Shown here piece by piece: positions 12,660-58,354 of a stretch of 64,000 bases of DNA. This stretch comes from Zancudomyces culisetae HAW-14-8. Taxonomy: Eukaryota > Fungi > Kickxellomycota. The position numbers and the translations under genes are program-made. Where the stretch lies: NCBI GenBank assembly GCA_052426225.1, contig JBNJNM010000006.1:2604001-2668000 (forward strand), written 5' to 3'. Positions within the stretch are counted from its first letter, which is position 1. Every line of letters starts with the position of its first letter. The notes under the pieces are model-generated. The model was not told the DNA's origin. It made no database searches and worked only from the letters and a program-made list of their open reading frames with translations.

Positions 12660-15026
12660 TTAACACTCATCATCAGCATGGCTATTTTCGTCCTCCTCAT
12701 TTTCGTTTACATTTAGGTTTTCAATAGCAGAAAAATTCATCTGTTTCTGGCGTTGTCGCAGATTCCAGCTTAGGGAAGTTTCCAAGCTCTCAAACCAGCT
12801 AGTCATTGGGTCTTCAAAGCTTGCAAGGATTGGAACGGAGTGTCTAGATGCAGTAACAGAGATATGATCACCTCTGCTTAGCTCAATACGGTTTCGCCCA
12901 TCGAAACTGACCCAAGCAGTGTTACGGCTGTCAGGAGGTACTTCTACCTGTAGCTCTATGGTGTCAGGAACCAACATAGGCCGGAAAGACAGAGTGTGTG
13001 GGCATATTGGTGTTACTAAGATCGCAGGAATCTCGGGATGTACAAGTGAGCCTCCGGCGGCCAGGGAATATGCTGTTGACCCAGTAGGAGTCGAAAGAGA
13101 CAATCCATCAGCTTGCACAGTCGTCAAGTGACGCCCACTAGCATACAGCTCCAGTACAGTGAGGAATGGGTTGAACCCTCGGTCTATTACCACCTCGTTC
13201 AGCACGTGGTATGTCTTATCTTTAACCCATAAATCTCCTCTACCATACATTTCCTTGCTGATAGATGTCCTGGCTTGTTTAGGCGTTTCATAGTGATCAT
13301 CTGTTGATTCAGAATCAAAAGAGCCTAGTGCTCTCCGCTCCCTTCTGCTTCCAGCTCTAGTTGTACCCTTTTTCGTAGACAGTGCAGACAATGGCGAACT
13401 GATGCTTACAAAGCTTCCCTGGTGGCTTTGGCCATAGTCACTAAGAGTGTGATTAGCGAAATTGTTATCGGTGTGAATACCCAACCCTCTGCCGCTAATA
13501 TGCGAAAAGGTTCTTGGTTCACACGACTCGGATCTGTCCTCATTTCCTCTTTGACGCCCACTTAATCCGACTCGGTCTCTTCCTAGCATGGCCTGCAGAT
13601 GACCGTGTTGATCAGCACTATTCATATTCCGCCTTCCCGTACGCCTTTCAGCTCCCCTCATTGATTTTGTTGATCTCGTTCTCAAAACTCCAACTGGATC
13701 ATGCGAAAACGTTCCATTTTCTTCCGGTGCCTCTGGCTTTTCCCCAAAGTTTTCGTCGGTATGTAAATGGCCCTCCTGTGAATCCGATGTATCTCGTCTA
13801 TGCAACTGGTTTCTTCGAGTGCTACCAGACCTACTTACTACCGACCTTGTACTGGGTGAACGACTTAGCCCCCTCTTTGACCGCAAAAAGCTCTGCGCTC
13901 CAATAGCCCCAGAAGCATTGCCCAGCGCCTGTTGATTTTTTTTCTCTACTCGATTCATATGAGCATTTTTTGCCTTTGAAAATTCCTCCCGTCTTAAAAA
14001 CTCTTTGTCTGCTATTCTATGAACTGTAACCTCAAACCTCATTCTCAAATCTACATATACACCTGTGTTGATTGCCTTTTTTAATACTTGTCTCGCCTGC
14101 TTCACGTCAAAAATAGTTAAAAATCCCAAAGACCCCAAAGCGAACGGTATTATTACAGGAACTGATCCTTGGAATAACCAGGATGTGTATAGCAGTGTAC
14201 CATCACCGCCCAATGTCACTGCAAAATCAAACCGGTCCGGTTGCTCTGCGCACAGTTCAGCTGTCCAGGGTTTTAGTCTCTCGGCTGCCTCTGGGTTTTT
14301 TTGAATCACACGAGCCAGATTAAACTTTCTGTCTTCATAGACTACTTTGTCAATGTACACTGTTAGTCCACTTGGGCACCCTGAAAAATGCGTAGTTATC
14401 AACCACACTGCTAGATCTCTCGTCAAACTAATAAGCGTTTCATCACCAGGCTTTGTCACTATCATACATTCAGATTTATTTATCAGCTTGACCTTGGAGT
14501 TTGTCAGTTTTTTGGTCATTGATCGCACAGATTCTGTGGTTTTTAGTAGTTTCTCTGTTTTCCACTCGCTAAAGCACTTGAGTTTTCCCCCATCTTCAAG
14601 CAGATCTTCAATAACTATCTTGCAGGCTTCCGTTTCTACCTTCTTTTTCTCGGCCTCTATAAAGGTACTTTTGTCATCGTCGCTGAATACTTTTCTCTGT
14701 TTAACCCTTTCTAAGGACTCCAATTTGGTATCCCTATTTTCACCTGATAGTTCCACCTCCTCCACCCCCCTCAGATCCATCATTTCCATCAGCCTGTGGA
14801 TCCCTGTCCCAGGATTTTGTTTTTCAGCTTCTACGGAACTCCCTTCCATTGTTGTAGGCTCCTCCTCAAAACTGCCCAATGTGCCACTCTGCTTTTGCCC
14901 CGGTTTTTTGATGTTTATTGGTTTTATCTCCTTGCAAGCAGCAATTTGTTCATCATTTAGGGATACTGAGCTTGAACCCCTGTGTTTTCTGTTTATTTTT
15001 TGGTGTACCACTACGCCTGATCTCAT
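12660..15026 (-). CDS. NAD(+)/NADH kinase (Utr1/Yef1-like)
   Basis: TLGGDGTLL, GSLGFLT, LNEVVIDRG, QADGL..STPTGSTAYSLAAGG and TPICPHTLSFRP motifs. Confidence 0.95.
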   Translation of the reverse strand: MRSGVVVHQKINRKHRGSSSVSLNDEQIAACKEIKPINIKKPGQKQSGTLGSFEEEPTTMEGSSVEAEKQNPGTGIHRLMEMMDLRGVEEVELSGENRDTKLESLERVKQRKVFSDDDKSTFIEAEKKKVETEACKIVIEDLLEDGGKLKCFSEWKTEKLLKTTESVRSMTKKLTNSKVKLINKSECMIVTKPGDETLISLTRDLAVWLITTHFSGCPSGLTVYIDKVVYEDRKFNLARVIQKNPEAAERLKPWTAELCAEQPDRFDFAVTLGGDGTLLYTSWLFQGSVPVIIPFALGSLGFLTIFDVKQARQVLKKAINTGVYVDLRMRFEVTVHRIADKEFLRREEFSKAKNAHMNRVEKKNQQALGNASGAIGAQSFLRSKRGLSRSPSTRSVVSRSGSTRRNQLHRRDTSDSQEGHLHTDENFGEKPEAPEENGTFSHDPVGVLRTRSTKSMRGAERRTGRRNMNSADQHGHLQAMLGRDRVGLSGRQRGNEDRSESCEPRTFSHISGRGLGIHTDNNFANHTLSDYGQSHQGSFVSISSPLSALSTKKGTTRAGSRRERRALGSFDSESTDDHYETPKQARTSISKEMYGRGDLWVKDKTYHVLNEVVIDRGFNPFLTVLELYASGRHLTTVQADGLSLSTPTGSTAYSLAAGGSLVHPEIPAILVTPICPHTLSFRPMLVPDTIELQVEVPPDSRNTAWVSFDGRNRIELSRGDHISVTASRHSVPILASFEDPMTSWFESLETSLSWNLRQRQKQMNFSAIENLNVNENEEDENSHADDEC

Positions 15027-16538
15027 CTTATATCCAATTTGTCTTTACTGCCTATTGATTGTTATACAGCCAGCTATTCTTACGCTCTTTCCAACTATTG
15101 TACTTTTGATTCTTTAAGTAAAAAATACCACAGTAGTTCTACCTATTGCTGTCTATTGATATATATTCGACTATATTGATAATAAAAATACTCCTAAAAT
15201 ACAAAGCTTAACGAGTATATAATCTAAAACGCATTCAAGGCTTTTTCTCTTCATTCAATATCTGTAGCTGTTAATAAAATTTTTAGGCTTTTTATCTACT
15301 TTTATATTACAAAAATTCTTCGTTTTTTAACTTGATATTGCTAGCTAAATTTGCTAAAAAAAATCTCATTATTTCCCGAACTAATTACTCCAGTCTTCTC
15401 CTTAGTTTAGCATTGGTAATTTTCAGTATGCAAAAGCCCTCGAAAGACTTTTTTTTTTTAGTGCCAATAAATACCCATAGATTGATTCGATTTAGCATGC
15501 TTGAAAACATAGGCAAATCAAATTACACTTTTTTTAATTGAATTGAATGGTAACAGGCTTGGAGGTAATAAATGCTTTTTATTACGCCAATAGAAAGCAT
15601 GCTCTAGGTATGAATATTCTTTTTATTACCAATAATGGTTAGCTTCTGTATTGCTGACCAAATACAATTGAAGACAATCTTAGAAACGTGATTATTATTA
15701 ATGTTGTTTGAAATGCCTCGAAAAAAACCAACTCTCCAATGGATTTTAAGCGATAAAGATCTCCCATCAAATCTCCGCTGTTTTCTCACTCCATTATTTT
15801 CTTTTTTTTGGACTGATAGCACCTGGAGACCTGTTTATTTTTGCTTTGCTGTGAAATTCAAATAAATGCCAATTGTAAACTACCCTCCGCCCGCTAATTC
15901 CCTATTTAAATCTACCACAAAAATCACTACACAATATTCAAGCAATAAAAACCATGATTTGGCCAGCTAATGTTAGATCAGAAGCAATAGAGCAAATTGG
16001 ATGTTAAAAAACACTTAGTTTTGCAAGCAATTTTAAATCAATAAAAAATATATCCAAATTATATACTGGTGTTATATTGATAAATATACTATACTACTAA
16101 TAAAAAAAATCCTTTCCACTCAACTAGACATACCCCTTCAACTCAAGTATGTAACATTCAAAGAAAACCACCAAGCTGAATATTATGACCAGATGAAACT
16201 ATGCGCACAAACCTTGCTTCAGATTGATTTTAGTCTCCGTGCTCACTCATCGCCACATTCCCACTTGTTTATTTCCATATTCTCGTTCTATATCAATACT
16301 ACTATAGTACACATTTTAGACCAAAGATATCAATCTCAGTGTTCCAAATTATGTCACACAATGAAAAAAAAATTTTTTTTTTGCAACAATGTGTCCATTC
16401 AGATTGTCTAAAATATCTATGTGGTTTTTCCCTTTTCTTTTAGCATAGCATTTATTAAAATACTTCCATAAGCTGTACCACTAGCAAATATTGCTACAAC
16501 ATATATCTAATGTAAGCTATGGGTCTTTCATTTAGAAA

Positions 16539-17678: not shown

Positions 17679-18104
17679 CTAATTGAATGAGCTTGGAGAA
17701 TCCTCATCAAAGGAGATTGTACCATTGAATGTACCTGTGAAGTCACATTCGTTTATTGGCTTACCAGAGCAGTCATCATCAGTGATGCTTGCAAAGTCGT
17801 ATATCTCTGTTGTGGAACCAGCAATGTACAAGAAGAACTGCTTGTTGTCAAAAGAGATGTGTGCGTTAGTAACTCCTGAGTCGAATACACAGTCTTCTGA
17901 AGTACAGTCGGGATCTGACTTGTAAAGTTTTATTGAGTCCTTGTATATACGTCTTCCATCAATAGCCAAGTAGAAATCCATGTAGTCTGGGTCTGAGGCG
18001 CTGGTTGTTACTGATCCTTTGAAGGATTTTCCATCATAAGGTCTACTACGTGCACCAGCGACGGAAAGAACTTGCAAGATTGTGGTAAATACAAACAGCT
18101 TCAT
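17679..18104 (-). CDS. Small secreted Cys-containing protein, unknown family (paralog A)
   Basis: 141-aa intronless ORF; signal peptide MKLFVFTTILQVLSVAG; 4 Cys; homologous to 20582-21040. Confidence 0.85.
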   Translation of the reverse strand: MKLFVFTTILQVLSVAGARSRPYDGKSFKGSVTTSASDPDYMDFYLAIDGRRIYKDSIKLYKSDPDCTSEDCVFDSGVTNAHISFDNKQFFLYIAGSTTEIYDFASITDDDCSGKPINECDFTGTFNGTISFDEDSPSSFN

Positions 18105-18879
18105 TTTTCTAGGTTTTTGTGTGGTGTTTTTCTTTGGTGTTGTTGTTTACTTTAAACTATGATTTAGTTTATGCCTGTACTTTTAGATTGTACTTGTGGT
18201 TGTTCTTGTCCCTAAGACTTTGTTGCTTTTTTGCTTTGTGTTTGCTATGCAAATTGCTATGTGAATGAGTTGATGATATTTTTGAGAATGTGCGAACTTT
18301 GTTCCATATTTATATCTAAAATCGTCATATTACCCGGGTATAGTACTTTAAAATATTTTTAAACTATTGTTATAACATGAGGTTATGAAACCATTATAGC
18401 AAAGTTTATATTTAGACACTTTTACAGTTTACGCTTTATGGTTATAAAGAAAACGTCTAGTTTTGTAAGACTACAGTAATGATTACAAGAGAACAAACTT
18501 GGTATGCTAATGGAGTTCATTTAGTTGTGCAGCCGAGCTGTACTGATTTATGCTGTACTAAATATAGATGCACCAGCTACTAATATATTTGTAATCGCAA
18601 AAAATCTATTTTTGTAAATGGGCGTTCTAAAGCAGCAATTGAGATTACCCAAGATTATAACAAAAAAAAATGTCTAAAATTAACCGATGCTTGTACTTTT
18701 ATGTAAATGCTAGTAAGTCGGCAAGTGTCTAAATAAAGACATTACATAACAAAATAAAGCATGGAAATTACATACAACCACAGTAGAATAGAAGCAAAAG
18801 CTAAAAATGGAAACATGGGGATATGGGGGATGGAACTCCGTGATATATTTGAAGACAGTGTAGTGAAAATGGTGTGTGA
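18047..18879 (-). repeat. Left arm of 833-bp inverted repeat (promoter + 5' UTR + signal-peptide exon part)
   Basis: Reverse complement of 19807-20639 with no net indel (coordinates sum to 38686 at both ends); I noticed about 3 substitutions. Confidence 0.97.
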
Positions 18880-19806
18880 GAGCATATGCAGTGTCAAGTT
18901 TGTTTATTTGTCTAGTTTTCGTTGTCCAAATTCACGAGCCTGGATCAAAATATAATATCCATTTCTATAGTACTTGAAACACTTCTAAAATATGCTACCT
19001 ACTCAACATGTAGCTTGATGTGATTTAACATGGGCTTATTAGCATACAATCTTGACCTCCAAGGCAAGAATTACTTTAAAATTACCGTACATAATGTTCA
19101 CGTTGTATGCAACCAAGATTGAACGAATGTAGGTTAAGTACGGGATGCCTCGGAAGTTTGCTTTTTTTACCTAACTGTCCGTACAGTCTATTCTATTTGA
19201 TTGGATTTTTTTTTGATATGGGGCGCGGTCTTAATGAAGTAAATTCAAAAATGCCATCCGGTTAATATCATTGACTTTTTTTTCGAGTTTGCTAAATTTT
19301 TTGCAATATTAAGCCGACCAGTACCTTATAATATACCCAATTTGATATAACTTTATCAATGTTCATAGCATATGGATTAGGTTGTGTACTCTAGACAACG
19401 TATAATGTGATATAATTTGTTAATCTGTATGTACTACATATACTCTGTTAGTCTGCATTACCAAGTTATATTTTGGTAAAAGCAGAATGCGATGGCACGC
19501 AGAAGATTCTATTACGTGAAAGAGATCATCTTTTTAGTATTTGTAGATTTCTTATGGCTAACAATTTTAAACTAGTTTGCAGGGTTTTTTCGAAGCATGT
19601 TAGATAAATGAGCATTTTAAAGGGGAAAATTCCAATCCTATAATTTGTCTAGGGGTCTAGAGCTTATTTGTTTTTATTAGCAAACTACATTGATAGGATG
19701 GTATCTTCTAATAAATCTTTATCTTTTTTGGATTTGTATAGCTGTCCAGTAGCAATCATTTAAAAAGTATTTTCTTAGACTTCTAGTTTATACCTTTGCA
19801 AGTATG

Positions 19807-20639
19807 TCACACACCATTTTCACTACACTGTCTCCAAATATATCACGGAGTTCCATCCCCCATATCCCCATGTTTCCATTTTTAGCTTTTGCTGCTATTC
19901 TACTGTGGTTGTATGTAATTTCCATGCTTTATTTTGTTATGTAATGTCTTTATTTAGACACTTGCCGACTTACTAGCATTTACATAAAAGTACAAGCATC
20001 GGTTAATTTTAGACATTTTTTTTTGTTATAATCTTGGGTAATCTCAATTGCTGCTTTAGAACGCCCATTTACAAAAATAGATTTTTTGCGATTACAAATA
20101 TATTAGTAGCTGGTGCATCTATATTTAGTACAGCATAAATCAGTACAGCTCGGCTGCACAACTAAATGAACTCCATTAGCATACCAAGTTTGTTCTCTTG
20201 TAATCATTACTGTAGTCTTACAAAACTAGACGTTTTCTTTATAACCATAAAGCGTAAACTGTAAAAGTGTCTAAATATAAACTTTGCTATAATGGTTTCA
20301 TAACCTCATGTTATAACAATAGTTTAAAAATATTTTAAAGTACTATACCCGGGTAATATGACGATTTTAGATATAAATATGGAACAAAGTTCGCACATTC
20401 TCAAAAATATCATCAACTCATTCACATAGCAATTTGCATAGCAAACACAAAGCAAAAAAGCAACAAAGTCTTAGGGACAAGAACAACCACAAGTACAATC
20501 TAAAAGTACAGGCATAAACTAAATCATAGTTTAAAGTAAACAACAACACCAAAGAAAAACACCACACAAAAACCTAGAAAAATGAAGCTGTTTGTATTTA
20601 CCACAATCTTGCAAGTTCTTTCCGTCGCCGGTGCACGTA
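19807..20639 (+). repeat. Right arm of 833-bp inverted repeat
   Basis: Mirror of 18047-18879; a unique 927-bp spacer lies at 18880-19806. Confidence 0.97.
20372..20377 (+). promoter_or_regulatory. Putative TATA box of the duplicated promoter (mirror copy at 18309-18314 on the - strand)
   Basis: TATAAA ~210 bp upstream of the ATG, followed by an A/C-rich leader. Confidence 0.55.
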
Positions 20640-21040
20640 CCAGCTCGAAGAAAAAGACCTGCAACTTCGATGGCAATGATTTTGAAATCTACATTGGTGC
20701 TGATTCAAACGATATGGGAAGCGTCTACTTCCGCTACTCTTTCGATGGAACATGGAAAAACAGCAAGTGGGCCTTCAAGTCAGGCAATGGCTGCTGGAAA
20801 AGGGACTGTAAAATCAGTGCTTATAGTTGTGGTGAGGTTGGTAACTGCGCTAGTTCTGATACCACAGACCTTCCTATCATTACATTTAATGAGGATGAGT
20901 TCTATCTCACGATAAATGGATGCAAAACCGAAACCTACACCTTCGAAAGCTTTGAAACTGAGGACTGTGATGACGACCGTCGCTCAATCTACAGCTGCGG
21001 CTTCTCTGGATCATACAAAGGAAAAATTTCATACAAATAG
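20582..21040 (+). CDS. Small secreted Cys-rich protein, unknown family (paralog B)
   Basis: 152-aa intronless ORF; the same first 19 aa as paralog A; 8 Cys; shared motifs F/YDG..F, F...DG, KS...C...DC, I.F....F.L.I.G..TE.Y.F, DC...I..C.F.G...G.IS. Confidence 0.85.
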   Translation: MKLFVFTTILQVLSVAGARTSSKKKTCNFDGNDFEIYIGADSNDMGSVYFRYSFDGTWKNSKWAFKSGNGCWKRDCKISAYSCGEVGNCASSDTTDLPIITFNEDEFYLTINGCKTETYTFESFETEDCDDDRRSIYSCGFSGSYKGKISYK

Positions 21041-39791: not shown

Positions 39792-40080
39792 TTTTTATGT
39801 ATGAAAGAATTGTATTTGGAACCACAAGGTAGCACCACTCTCTTAGTCGTAATAAGAGTGCTTATGAATCATACAATCACTATCAAGTAGAGCTTCTGCT
39901 GTGTATGACACAAAGGTTAGGAGGGATTGAAAAGTTCAAACTGAGCGTATGGATCGAGATCATAGCCATGATCAGGTGTTGGGATGAGACTGTAATATGA
40001 ATACATGATGGAAATCAGGGCTAAAGCGAGCACCCGGAATGTGATAGATGTGTATTTGTGTATTTGTGTATTTGTAATTT
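39792..40080 (+). repeat. ~290-bp repeat R, copy 1 (inverted partner at 54968-55248)
   Basis: For example gaattgtatttggaaccacaaggtagcaccactctcttagtcg...cacccggaatgtgatagatgtgtatttg is found as reverse complement at 54968-55248, with a handful of substitutions and one 8-bp unit indel. Confidence 0.95.
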
Positions 40081-40353: not shown

Positions 40354-40981
40354 TTGGCCTTATTTTGCGTTAAGGCAGTTGCTAGGGTTATAGGAGGGTT
40401 GTTCTTTCTACTTATCAAATGCTGTAATGAGTTATCGATGGACATTGAAACGTTTTTATTATTTGGCCTTTGATGCGTGGATTTACGCAAATTAGCTTCC
40501 GATACAGCTACTTGAAGAATTTTACTTTCATGCTATTTGCTATAAAAAAAAATGATTGTGATATTTGGCGCGGAATAATTAATTTCGTTTTTCGGAATAT
40601 CCAAGCCCATGTCGTAAATGGGGTACCAATGTGAATTTTTCAAAGGCTAGGCAAAACAATGAAAGCTCTGAAATTGTGTTCGTATATTTCCAAATGTGTT
40701 TGTAATCTAATTAAAAATTTTTCTCGTTTTTTTTCCGAAACCTAAATATCAAGCCCCAATCAACAGTTTAAATTAATTACAGATTGTAAAAGCCAAATTA
40801 ACATTTAAGGCGCAAAAAGTAAGCATTGTAGCTTTTTATAAAACTTCTAGCAACTAGAGTACAAAACACCAGTTGGGATATTATAACTACTAAAGTTGGC
40901 CTTGAAAAACAACCTAATAACAAGGTCATTTCAAAAAGTCCGTAGCAATAACGAGAAAAAAAATAAACGAGAAAAGGAATA

Positions 40982-41797
40982 ATGGTGGTGTGGCCTCCAG
41001 CAGGAATAACAGTAGTACCTGAGGATATGATCCTTGGGTCTCTATCCAAGTACGTAATGCAACCTCAGTACGTACTGACCATCATCTTTACTTATGTCAT
41101 TCTTGTTCATGTGTTGCAACCACCAAAGGAAAAATCAACAGTGTCAAGAATCGAAGCCAAGAAAAGCACCAAGGATATTGGAAAAGTCGCTAAGCAGAAT
41201 AGTGCTCTTACTGCCTTTATCTTCTTGCACAACACATTCTTGTGCTTGTACTCTGCTTGGACATTTGTGAAGTCCGCACCATTGGTATATAAAGTATTTA
41301 CAACAGAGGGTGTGTGTGATCCAAACAACGTATCGTGGAACAGTGGGATGCTTGAGATAACATACTTGTTCTACTTGTCAAAATACTACGAATTTGTAGA
41401 TACTGCAATTATCTTGATGAAGGGACGTCGCGTGATAACCCTCCAAACATACCACCACGCGGGGGCAGTACTGGGCATGTATTTGGGATGCCTGTTCATT
41501 CCCACACAGATATTTGTTTTTGTCGTATTCAACTCATTTGTGCACACAATCATGTATGCATATTATGCGCTCACAAGTATTGGGTTTTCTCCGTCCGGAA
41601 AAGAATACATTACAAGACTGCAACTTGTTCAATTTTTTACAGGAGTCCCTGCTGGTATTATCATGAACTGTATGGAGCATTGCAACGACTTTTATAAGGT
41701 CATGGCCACGTCTGTGAATCTAGCATATGTGGTTTATTTAGCAGTTATGTTTTTAGATTTTTCCAAAAAAACGTATCGTAAGAAAAAAGCGGTGTAG
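40982..41797 (+). CDS. GNS1/SUR4 (ELO) family fatty-acid elongase, copy A
   Basis: LSKYYEFVDT, LQTYHHAG, FNSFVHTIMYAYY, ITRLQLVQF, C-terminal KKxx; intronless. Confidence 0.95.
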   Translation: MVVWPPAGITVVPEDMILGSLSKYVMQPQYVLTIIFTYVILVHVLQPPKEKSTVSRIEAKKSTKDIGKVAKQNSALTAFIFLHNTFLCLYSAWTFVKSAPLVYKVFTTEGVCDPNNVSWNSGMLEITYLFYLSKYYEFVDTAIILMKGRRVITLQTYHHAGAVLGMYLGCLFIPTQIFVFVVFNSFVHTIMYAYYALTSIGFSPSGKEYITRLQLVQFFTGVPAGIIMNCMEHCNDFYKVMATSVNLAYVVYLAVMFLDFSKKTYRKKKAV

Positions 41798-54967: not shown

Positions 54968-55248
54968 AAATTACAAATACACAAATACACATCTATCACA
55001 TTCCGGGTGCTCGCTTTAGCCCTGATTTCCATCATGTATTCATATTACAGTCTCATCCCAACACCTGATCATGGCTATGATCTCGATCCATACGCTCAGT
55101 TTGAACTTTTCAATACCTCCTAACCTTTGTGTCATACACAGCAGAAACTCTATTTGATAGTGATTGTATGATTCATAAGCACTTTTATTACGACTAAGAG
55201 AGTGGTGCTACCTTGTGGTTCCAAATACAATTCCTTCATGTATAAAAA
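54968..55248 (-). repeat. ~280-bp repeat R, copy 2 (inverted)
   Basis: Reverse complement of 39792-40080. Confidence 0.95.
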
Positions 55249-56159: not shown

Positions 56160-56972
56160 TTACTCTGCCTTTTTCTTGTATGTTTTCTTGGAAAAGTCCA
56201 AGAACAAGGAAACAAGAGGGATAACATAAAGCAAGTTCACAGACGTGGCCAAAACTTTGGTGAATTGGTTGCAGTGTTCGAAGAATGACATTACTGTAGC
56301 AACTCCAAAACCGAGGAAGAATTGTGTAAGTTGCATCTTGGTGATGTATTTCTTACCTGGTGGTGTGAATCCAATACTTGTGAGCGCATAGTATGCATAC
56401 ATGATTGTGTGCACAAATGAGTTGAATACGACAAAAGAGTAGATTTGTGTGGGAATGAACAGGCATCCCAAATACATGCCCAGTATAGCACCTGCATGAT
56501 GGTATGTTTGGAGGGTTATCACGCGACGTCCCTTCATCAAGATAATTGCAGTATCTACAAATTCGTAGTATTTTGACAAGTAGAACAAGTATGTTATCTC
56601 AAGCATCCCACTGTTCCACGATACGTTGTTTGGATCACACACACCCTCTGTTGTAAATACTTTATATACCAATGGTGCGGACTTCACAAATGTCCAAGCA
56701 GAGTACAAGCACAAGAATGTGTTGTGCAAGAAGATAAAGGCAGTAAGAGCACTATTCTGCTTAGCGACTTTTCCAATATCCTTGGTGCTTTTCTTGGCTT
56801 CGATTCTTGACACTGTTGATTTTTCCTTTGGTGGTTGCAACACATGAACAAGAATGACATAAGTAAAGATGATGGTCAGTACGTACTGAGGTTGCATTAC
56901 GTACTTGGATAGAGACCCAAGGATCATATCCTCAGGTACTACTGTTATTCCTGCTGGAGGCCACGCTACCAT
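56160..56972 (-). CDS. GNS1/SUR4 (ELO) family fatty-acid elongase, copy B
   Basis: Same motifs as copy A; 56500-56964 is identical to 40990-41454; the C-terminal third is diverged. Confidence 0.95.
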   Translation of the reverse strand: MVAWPPAGITVVPEDMILGSLSKYVMQPQYVLTIIFTYVILVHVLQPPKEKSTVSRIEAKKSTKDIGKVAKQNSALTAFIFLHNTFLCLYSAWTFVKSAPLVYKVFTTEGVCDPNNVSWNSGMLEITYLFYLSKYYEFVDTAIILMKGRRVITLQTYHHAGAILGMYLGCLFIPTQIYSFVVFNSFVHTIMYAYYALTSIGFTPPGKKYITKMQLTQFFLGFGVATVMSFFEHCNQFTKVLATSVNLLYVIPLVSLFLDFSKKTYKKKAE

Positions 56973-58354
56973 TGTCGTATCCTAATTTTTGCTATATTTC
57001 TTTTGGATCTTGAGCCCGGATAATTCTAAAGAACTCGAAAATATATTTTAATTTTGTAGTTTTCCTATTTTTGAAGTGCAGCTTTGTTCCTTTTTTTTAT
57101 AATGAAAATTTTCTGTTCAGTTGAGCAAAGTTGATATTGTTTTTAGATTCACTGTAGTTGTAGGTTTTATTTTACCAATTAAAGTAAAGTGATTAAAGAA
57201 AAAATATCGAGTATAATAGAGCAAAAGTGAGATGAAAGCAAAAATCAAAAAACTTTTCTATTCGCAATATTATGGCATTTTTGATAAGAAACTAGTAATA
57301 AATAAGCCTTTTTACAAATCGAATTCGCTTGATTTACGTTTTTTGGCTTGCCTTTTCAATTATTGTTTTCGATTATTCAAACCCCTGCCAACTTTGGATT
57401 TTATTTACAAACCAAAATCAATTTCATCAATTTAGTTCTGGCCTTTTGTTTTGTTTTAGTCTTATTTTATTACCCATTCTTCTTTTATACTCTTGTCTCA
57501 CTGTTATCGCTTAATTGTGTAACCAAATTTAAATAATTGGACAGGGATACCAAACCAAATAGGCAAGTATACTTGCTCAAAAATTTTTTTATTATTAAAA
57601 TATTGTTTTGGTTCTAACTAATTGAATTGTGGTTCAACAATATAACTCGTGGGTATTGTATACAATTAGAAGAATATGGGCTATTTTTTTGGTTAGCTGA
57701 CCTAATCGATGTAAATAGTCAGAAACTCAAAAAGTGGAAAATAGTCCAAGAATCGGAAAGAAGACAAGTGGTATATGTAAAACTTTACATTATTCAACAG
57801 ATGGTTCGACAGTAAGCACCATATTACTGGATTGTTTTTACCAAGATATGTTTTTGTTTTTGTATACTGCAAAAATAGTAACCATAGATCTTTGTTCAAA
57901 TACAGAGATCCCAGTTTAAGAAAAAAAGTCAACACCGTTTATGGTTTGTAAACTGATTTTTTTTTTCCATTGATCTGAATGCTTGGTTCAAAATTTGGCT
58001 CTGACTTGCGTTTTTTTTTATTAGCTTGAAGCATTTTTTTTTGTTCACAACTTAAAGGGTACGAACCATATTGAAAAGCTAAAGTTTCAATACGATAGCA
58101 TTGACCAGAGTAAAAATATCTCATTAATAGTAAATTACACTCATATTTGTATCTATTCATGAAATGAGAACGGAGAAGCTATATTTATTCAGATAAATGG
58201 TTATTGATGTATTTACTCTAGTGTAATGTGAAAAAGTAATATAAATTGGGCTTATAGATACAAAAATTACTTACCAAAAAAGAAGAAAAAAGAAAATGTA
58301 TTACTTACAAAAAATTGGAATGTCAACAAAAAAAAAAGAAAAAGATATACGTAA

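Follow-up and report, generated by a model that had tools for sequence, protein, structure and literature searches.

The locus described here raises the question of how two putatively secreted proteins with little mature sequence in common come to stand behind a promoter and a leader that are almost letter for letter the same. It lies in a 64,000-nt window, meaning the whole stretch of DNA that was analyzed, of the genome of Zancudomyces culisetae HAW-14-8 (assembly GCA_052426225.1, contig JBNJNM010000006.1, positions 2,604,001 to 2,668,000 of the forward strand; this contig is called C6 below). Z. culisetae, a member of the Harpellales, inhabits the gut of mosquito larvae. The two genes, A and B, are placed head to head on a palindrome of about 2.6 kb, their open reading frames (ORFs) pointing outward from its arms. 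We regard it as probable that the palindrome joins anciently diverged paralogs and that recombination between its arms gives rise both to gene conversion and to a neutral inversion of the spacer. In positions of the window, the parts of the locus are as follows:

18047-18879 (unstranded): left arm, 833 nt, holding 58 nt of the coding sequence of gene A (the leader), the 5' untranslated region (UTR), the TATA box TATAAATA at 18307-18314 (minus strand) and upstream DNA to -775.
18880-19806 (unstranded): spacer, 927 nt, AT-rich and single-copy within the locus.
19807-20639 (unstranded): right arm, 833 nt, the mirror of the left arm, with TATAAATA at 20372-20379 (plus strand) and the leader of gene B.
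17679-18104 (minus strand): gene A, a single-exon ORF of 141 amino acids, with codons 1-19 and the first base of codon 20 inside the left arm.
20582-21040 (plus strand): gene B, a single-exon ORF of 152 amino acids, which has additional cysteines and an insertion relative to its paralog A.

A repeat search of 16-23 kb of the window returned the two arms as the sole large inverted pair, and base-by-base comparison registered exactly three mismatches between them (arm positions 11, 746 and 806 from the outer end; 99.64% identity). Outside the arms, on the outer as on the inner side, matching dropped immediately to chance level, and the spacer, tested for palindromy of its own, showed none. The arms do not carry complete duplicated genes: each reaches from 775 nt upstream of its gene to 58 nt into the coding sequence (19 codons and one base) and ends there, and the TATA box (approximately 203 nt before each ATG), the 5' UTR and the ATG of both genes all sit within the arms. 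The coding portions differ between A and B at a single synonymous site, in codon 16 (GCT in A, GCC in B), and both proteins begin with MKLFVFTTILQVLSVAGAR. A signal peptide and its cleavage site are predicted by eye from this hydrophobic N-terminus, which is a low-confidence part of the AlphaFold2 (AF2) models of both proteins. The 3' flanks of A and B are joined by no repeat in the same search. An original prediction made from the DNA letters alone had described 833-bp arms with about three mismatches around a 927-bp spacer, covering upstream DNA, the TATA box, the 5' UTR and the first 19 codons, with unrelated 3' flanks beyond; repeat search, ORF positions and arm comparison agreed with it on each of these points.

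The age of the two genes bears directly on how their leaders came to match. A and B are 37% identical over the whole proteins, and their mature parts are identical at 36 of 122 positions, close to the roughly 30% that had been estimated by eye. The mature part of A scored 127 against B (36 identities), compared with 142 against a paralog on contig C15 and 132 against one on contig C10. Since A is thus about as far from B as from its dispersed paralogs, the split between A and B dates back as far as the spread of the family, and no recent duplication can have left the identical leader behind. What it points to is recent homogenization of old paralogs, which is how the original prediction had read it.

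Evidence for how this homogenization proceeds came from a second copy of the locus. The genome searched (27.09 Mb in 25 contigs) is likely the published PacBio HiFi/hifiasm assembly of HAW-14-8 (27.2 Mb, 26 contigs, GC content of 35.6% [PMC12611240]). The arm had four matches in this genome, two in the C6 window and two on contig C12, the latter likewise 927 nt apart, and the spacer had only two copies, one on C6 and one on C12. With the exception of the spacer, the whole 64-kb window matched C12:201339-265380 collinearly and in reverse, at 0.31-0.33% mismatches; the twins are roughly 99.5% identical overall. This twin region extends over at least 64 kb and less than the whole contig: at three points sampled along C12 (20 kb, 1.2 Mb and 2.4 Mb) there was no twin on C6, and the paralog locus on C10 was single-copy. 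Two origins of the twin fit these results, a heterozygous region kept as a haplotig and a recent segmental duplication; under both, the loci on C6 and C12 are two independent descendants of one ancestral palindrome. For HAW-14-8, an Illumina-only assembly came to 21.0 Mb versus 27.2 Mb with HiFi reads (PMC12611240).

Alignment of all four arms identified five columns (57, 239, 355, 442 and 523) and a 3-nt indel with the same state in both arms of a copy and a different state in C6 and C12. Six further changes were restricted to single arms. The arm boundaries are the same in C6 and C12, so the palindrome is older than the split between them, and the six copy-specific changes common to both arms must therefore have been copied from arm to arm after that split. 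Six exact parallel mutations are not a credible alternative. The copy-specific variants found in both arms thus support arm-to-arm gene conversion, or concerted evolution, and the original prediction's proposal that conversion keeps regulation and secretion constant as the payload diversifies holds in its conversion part, through the five substitutions and one indel. A single site 10 nt from the outer edge remained gene-specific, with T in the A arms and C in the B arms of both C6 and C12.

A third haplotype was available from the older Illumina assembly of strain COL-18-3 (GCA_001969505.1), which carries 30 and 51 private differences in approximately 9 kb on either flank. In that assembly A and B lie on separate contigs, A closing one and B opening the other, and each contig breaks off within an arm (497 nt upstream of A, 636 nt upstream of B), as is expected of short-read assembly at a real near-identical repeat. 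Across the 555 nt covered in both COL-18-3 arms, the arms were identical except at the gene-specific site, which again distinguished A from B, and formed a mosaic of C6 and C12 states. That two strains and three haplotypes all carry the palindrome gives a lower bound for its age. Both genes were intact in all three haplotypes: A had one replacement each in C12 (T33K) and COL-18-3 (P65A) and no synonymous change, and B was identical throughout. A metagenome scan with an invariant 28-nt word of the arm returned no match.

We propose that general homologous recombination acts between the two arms. Resolved without crossover, it would transfer new mutations between the arms by gene conversion and so produce concerted evolution of the arms; resolved with crossover, it would invert the 927-nt spacer. 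The conversion domain would end where homology ends, which is just past the leader on the outer side and at the unique spacer on the inner side. On the outer side, an 18-nt insertion in B relative to A directly after the common 58 nt, together with the saturated mature-coding DNA, would stop the extension of heteroduplex; to judge from the gene-specific site 10 nt inside the edge, tracts seldom run all the way out to it. With conversion ending at the leader, both genes would keep the same proximal promoter and secretion leader as their mature parts stay different, and A and B are probably co-regulated.

The product expected of a crossover was also seen in the assembly. BLAST of the C12 region against the window gave three pieces: the flanks with the arms matched in reverse orientation and stopped exactly at the inner arm ends, and the block of arm, spacer and arm matched in forward orientation. 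Compared alone, the C6 and C12 spacers matched forward over the full 927 nt with 12 differences. At the level of the assembly, the flipped orientation of the spacer relative to A and B is the only structural difference between the 64-kb twins, and such a flip is what crossover between the arms is expected to yield. Of the suggestion in the original prediction that crossover flips the spacer as a possible phase switch, the flip was found in the assembly (C6 versus C12) and the switch is unsupported, the promoters being in the arms and no recombinase gene being among the called neighbors. Divergence between the twins was approximately 1% in the palindrome versus 0.32% in the flanks, which might have pointed to an old inversion polymorphism, but several other intergenic 2-kb bins reach similar values, and we make no claim from it.

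Several observations weigh against this account of the locus. The spacer flip is seen at the level of one assembly, and the twin that provides the comparison has the two possible origins given above. The agreement of the arms in COL-18-3 does not count as independent evidence, since repeats of this kind are collapsed in short-read assembly. The GC content of the arms (32.3%) equals that of the spacer (32.4%), and the arms thus lack the signature that GC-biased conversion would leave if it had been long and intense. The outer boundary is very sharp and could stem from a single replication-based copy event followed by few conversions. The arms may be a never-diverged remnant of the original inverted duplication, or they may have been re-created by a later copy event; the sharp edge and the absence of GC enrichment make us lean slightly toward the younger origin.

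Among the alternatives, the one that survives best, unlikely as it is, holds that the arms and their conversion are real and that the flipped spacer on one contig is an error of assembly or finishing (hifiasm/FinisherSC). Inverted repeats are classic sites of mis-orientation, and a flip seen without a spanning read could have arisen in this way. However, the 2.6-kb palindrome should fit several times into the length of a HiFi read, and the 12 copy-specific differences between the spacers indicate that separate reads went into each contig. Moreover, the window's other inverted pair (40981-41626 and 56328-56973; 647 nt, 95.7% identity), whose members lie approximately 15 kb apart, encloses a segment that is unflipped between C6 and C12. 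A second pair (39792-40067 and 54973-55248; 276 nt, 97.5% identity) also brackets a segment of approximately 15 kb, which has the same orientation in C6 and C12.

It is very unlikely that the spacer is a regulatory invertible element, in which asymmetric distal control elements within the spacer would make its orientation decide whether A or B is expressed more strongly. The presence of both orientations in one genome assembly would fit such a switch, as would the nature of the cargo, since secreted proteins of a lineage-specific family are what phase variation usually controls. Against it, the TATA boxes, the 5' UTRs and 775 nt upstream of both genes lie within the arms and are untouched by a flip. 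The spacer had no Rfam, tRNA or Pfam match and no long ORF (its ORFs of 51-64 amino acids were without Pfam match), and no recombinase gene was found among the called genes within 10 kb on either side. The domains of the called neighbors were those of an NAD kinase, a protein kinase (Pkinase), TFIP11 (TIP_N/G-patch), a WKF protein, a helicase (ResIII/Helicase_C) and APC4 (ANAPC4). With core promoters that a flip leaves unaltered, a spacer that has no recognizable gene or RNA, and housekeeping neighbors that include no recombinase, a phase switch is unsupported, and the inversion is most likely a neutral by-product of recombination between the arms.

A stronger version, which we hold to be highly improbable, has the palindrome flipping actively and reversibly, with orientation biasing which paralog is made in the mosquito gut and with conversion selected because it keeps the promoter-leader units interchangeable; if true, reversible flipping would constitute an expression switch based on homologous recombination in an early-diverging fungus. 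Least probable of all is a one-off event in which a single recent 833-nt inverted copy replaced the promoter and leader of the other gene with no continuing conversion, which would suit the very sharp boundary at the end of the leader (without a gradient) and the arms' lack of GC enrichment, but the palindrome has the same boundaries in both twins and in a second strain and is hence older than their split, and the six changes since then, common to both arms of one copy only, would otherwise have to be exact parallel mutations.

The proposal that the arm is a portable promoter-leader module that captures family members did not hold. Searched against the whole genome, the arm had no further copies fused to other payloads, its four matches all being the arms of the two twin loci, and an arm that occurs at no other genomic site is no portable module. 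Other members of the family have different leaders: searches of the genome with A and B identified four more family genes, listed below, whose leaders and upstream DNA are unrelated to the arm and which have no inverted repeats nearby. In the C10 gene, the motif QLLSVA recalls QVLSVA of the A/B leader. A candidate third relic of the leader at 15742-15834 of the window (tblastn E value of 0.05) was rejected, as it contains in-frame stops and has no DNA similarity to the arm.

L018:1483-1884 (minus strand): family member on contig C10, from the genome search.
L019:1492-1893 (minus strand): family member on contig C15, from the genome search.
L020:1435-1881 (plus strand): family member on contig C11, from the genome search.
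L021:1156-1878 (minus strand): family member on contig C21, from the genome search, with a basic Ser/Lys-rich tail of approximately 100 residues.

These four members are 134-241 amino acids long and share with A and B a signal-peptide-like N-terminus and the same domain of approximately 110 residues. The mature part of A contains four cysteines; two of the four columns are invariant in the family, and the remaining pair is present in every member but the paralog on C11. The closest database protein to A was AX774_g44 of Z. culisetae, annotated "hypothetical protein," which represents A in the older assembly of the species and has a single residue changed. When 1.8 billion representative proteins were searched with a profile, 13 matches were returned, seven of which covered the whole domain: five of the six Z. 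culisetae genes and two 140-amino-acid proteins (P0007 and P0010) from two other fungal assemblies that are taken to be Harpellales. Neither P0007 nor P0010 is part of a head-to-head pair. The remaining six matches were short, multi-stretch alignments to long or repetitive proteins. At E values of ≤10, Pfam gave no family for five of the six members and a chance-level match to an IS91 zinc domain for B. No match to the family was obtained in a sequence profile search of the Protein Data Bank (PDB), Alt a 1 and PevD1 included, nor for the family proteins in the ESM Atlas, and Foldseek returned no structural match. The AF2 models are all-beta, with confident prediction for A (pLDDT of 83) and fair prediction for B (pLDDT of 76). 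Judged from the profile search and these models, A and B appear to belong to an orphan family of secreted beta-barrel proteins, seen only in Harpellales gut fungi.

In an exhaustive structural search with VIA-align, the best whole-domain matches to the models of A and B included Alt a 1 (4aud), PevD1 (5xmz) and Tsp1 (7cwj), with Z scores, respectively, of 5.9, 5.8 and 5.6 for A and 4.9, 5.8 and 4.7 for B, where scores become reliable at about 8. The alignments extended over 94-107 residues at root mean square deviations (rmsd) of 3.6-4.8 Å and sequence identities of 5-11%; for Alt a 1 and PevD1 alone, 101-103 residues were aligned at an rmsd of 4.6-4.8 Å. Like these three proteins, A and B are modeled as all-beta secreted proteins of approximately 110 residues; unlike the Alt a 1 family, they have no match to the Pfam AltA1 family, in addition to the negative PDB sequence and Foldseek results. 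The resemblance to Alt a 1 and PevD1 is weak and may serve as a lead, not as a classification.

A 260-nt contig from an outdoor metatranscriptome was 100% identical to positions 17994-18253 of the window, running from the mature-coding DNA of A across the arm boundary and through the leader, and ending 149 nt upstream of the ATG of A and 54 nt downstream of the TATA box. This end fits the proposed promoter of A, with the caveat that DNA can contaminate RNA libraries. In two species of Smittium, the contigs that carry the NAD kinase orthologue (13 kb in Smittium culicis and 9.7 kb in S. mucronatum) held no family member and no comparable inverted repeat, a negative that is weak because the contigs are short; on this basis, the A/B pair may be specific to the Zancudomyces lineage. 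The NAD kinase gene that adjoins A in the window (12660-15026, minus strand) is a single exon of 788 codons, of which BLAST aligns just 20-28% to orthologues. Elsewhere in the genome, a repeat of approximately 870 nt at C12:21128-22000 (L033:1128-2000) had at least 40 copies of 93-96% identity on most contigs and was often paired with a piece of approximately 230 nt lying approximately 470 nt off in the opposite orientation; the repeat probably represents a transposable element whose terminal parts are inverted or long terminal repeat (LTR)-like.

Palindromes with such behavior are known from sex chromosomes. Palindromes P1-P8 of the human Y chromosome and those of primate and mouse X chromosomes have arms of >99% identity around a unique spacer and undergo conversion and occasional inversions (PMC3723533, PMC8600007, PMC8327919), and the Z. 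culisetae locus shares with them its near-identical arms, arm-to-arm conversion and inverted spacer. The sex-chromosome arms measure from 10 kb to >1 Mb, each holding an identical copy of entire genes, and their conversion is GC-biased. Here, in contrast, the arms are 0.8 kb long, carry only the promoter and leader of two old and unlike paralogs, show no GC excess and occur in a fungus of zygomycete grade.

Partial concerted evolution of the 5' regions of paralogs is familiar from cases such as the human gamma-globin pair, where heterology limits the conversion tract. Conotoxins and frog skin peptides likewise combine a conserved leader with a hypervariable mature part, although conservation of the leader is usually ascribed to selection and exon structure rather than to a conversion tract that has been demonstrated. 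The Z. culisetae pair resembles these systems in that promoter and leader are kept alike and the mature part differs, but most of them are tandem or dispersed, whereas A and B form a palindrome. Invertible systems such as fimS, Hin/Gin, the shufflons and FLP of the yeast 2-micron plasmid recombine at short recombinase sites and have a recombinase gene dedicated to the purpose, and the DNA that they invert contains a promoter or coding segment. Like them, the locus has a segment between inverted repeats that occurs in both orientations; unlike them, it has no such recombinase sites, no recombinase gene among the called neighbors and no recognizable promoter or coding segment in the spacer.

Because its arms hold only parts of genes and the mature parts match at so few positions, we regard the locus as a small, partial-gene example of the known palindromes that evolve by arm conversion and spacer inversion (PMC3723533, PMC8327919, PMC8600007). 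To call it an undescribed system, as had been suggested, is too strong: closely spaced inverted repeats are known to behave in this way, and no new kind of genetic system is revealed. The locus does bring together both recombination outcomes of close inverted repeats at one site in an early-diverging fungus, with a two-copy internal control. It also marks a site at which short-read assemblies break and where calls of orientation need long reads. For the biology of the two genes, it indicates that a conversion tract ending at the end of the signal peptide can hold the regulation and secretion of anciently diverged paralogs identical. The six members of this lineage-restricted family of small, putatively secreted beta-barrel proteins are candidates for interaction with the insect gut.

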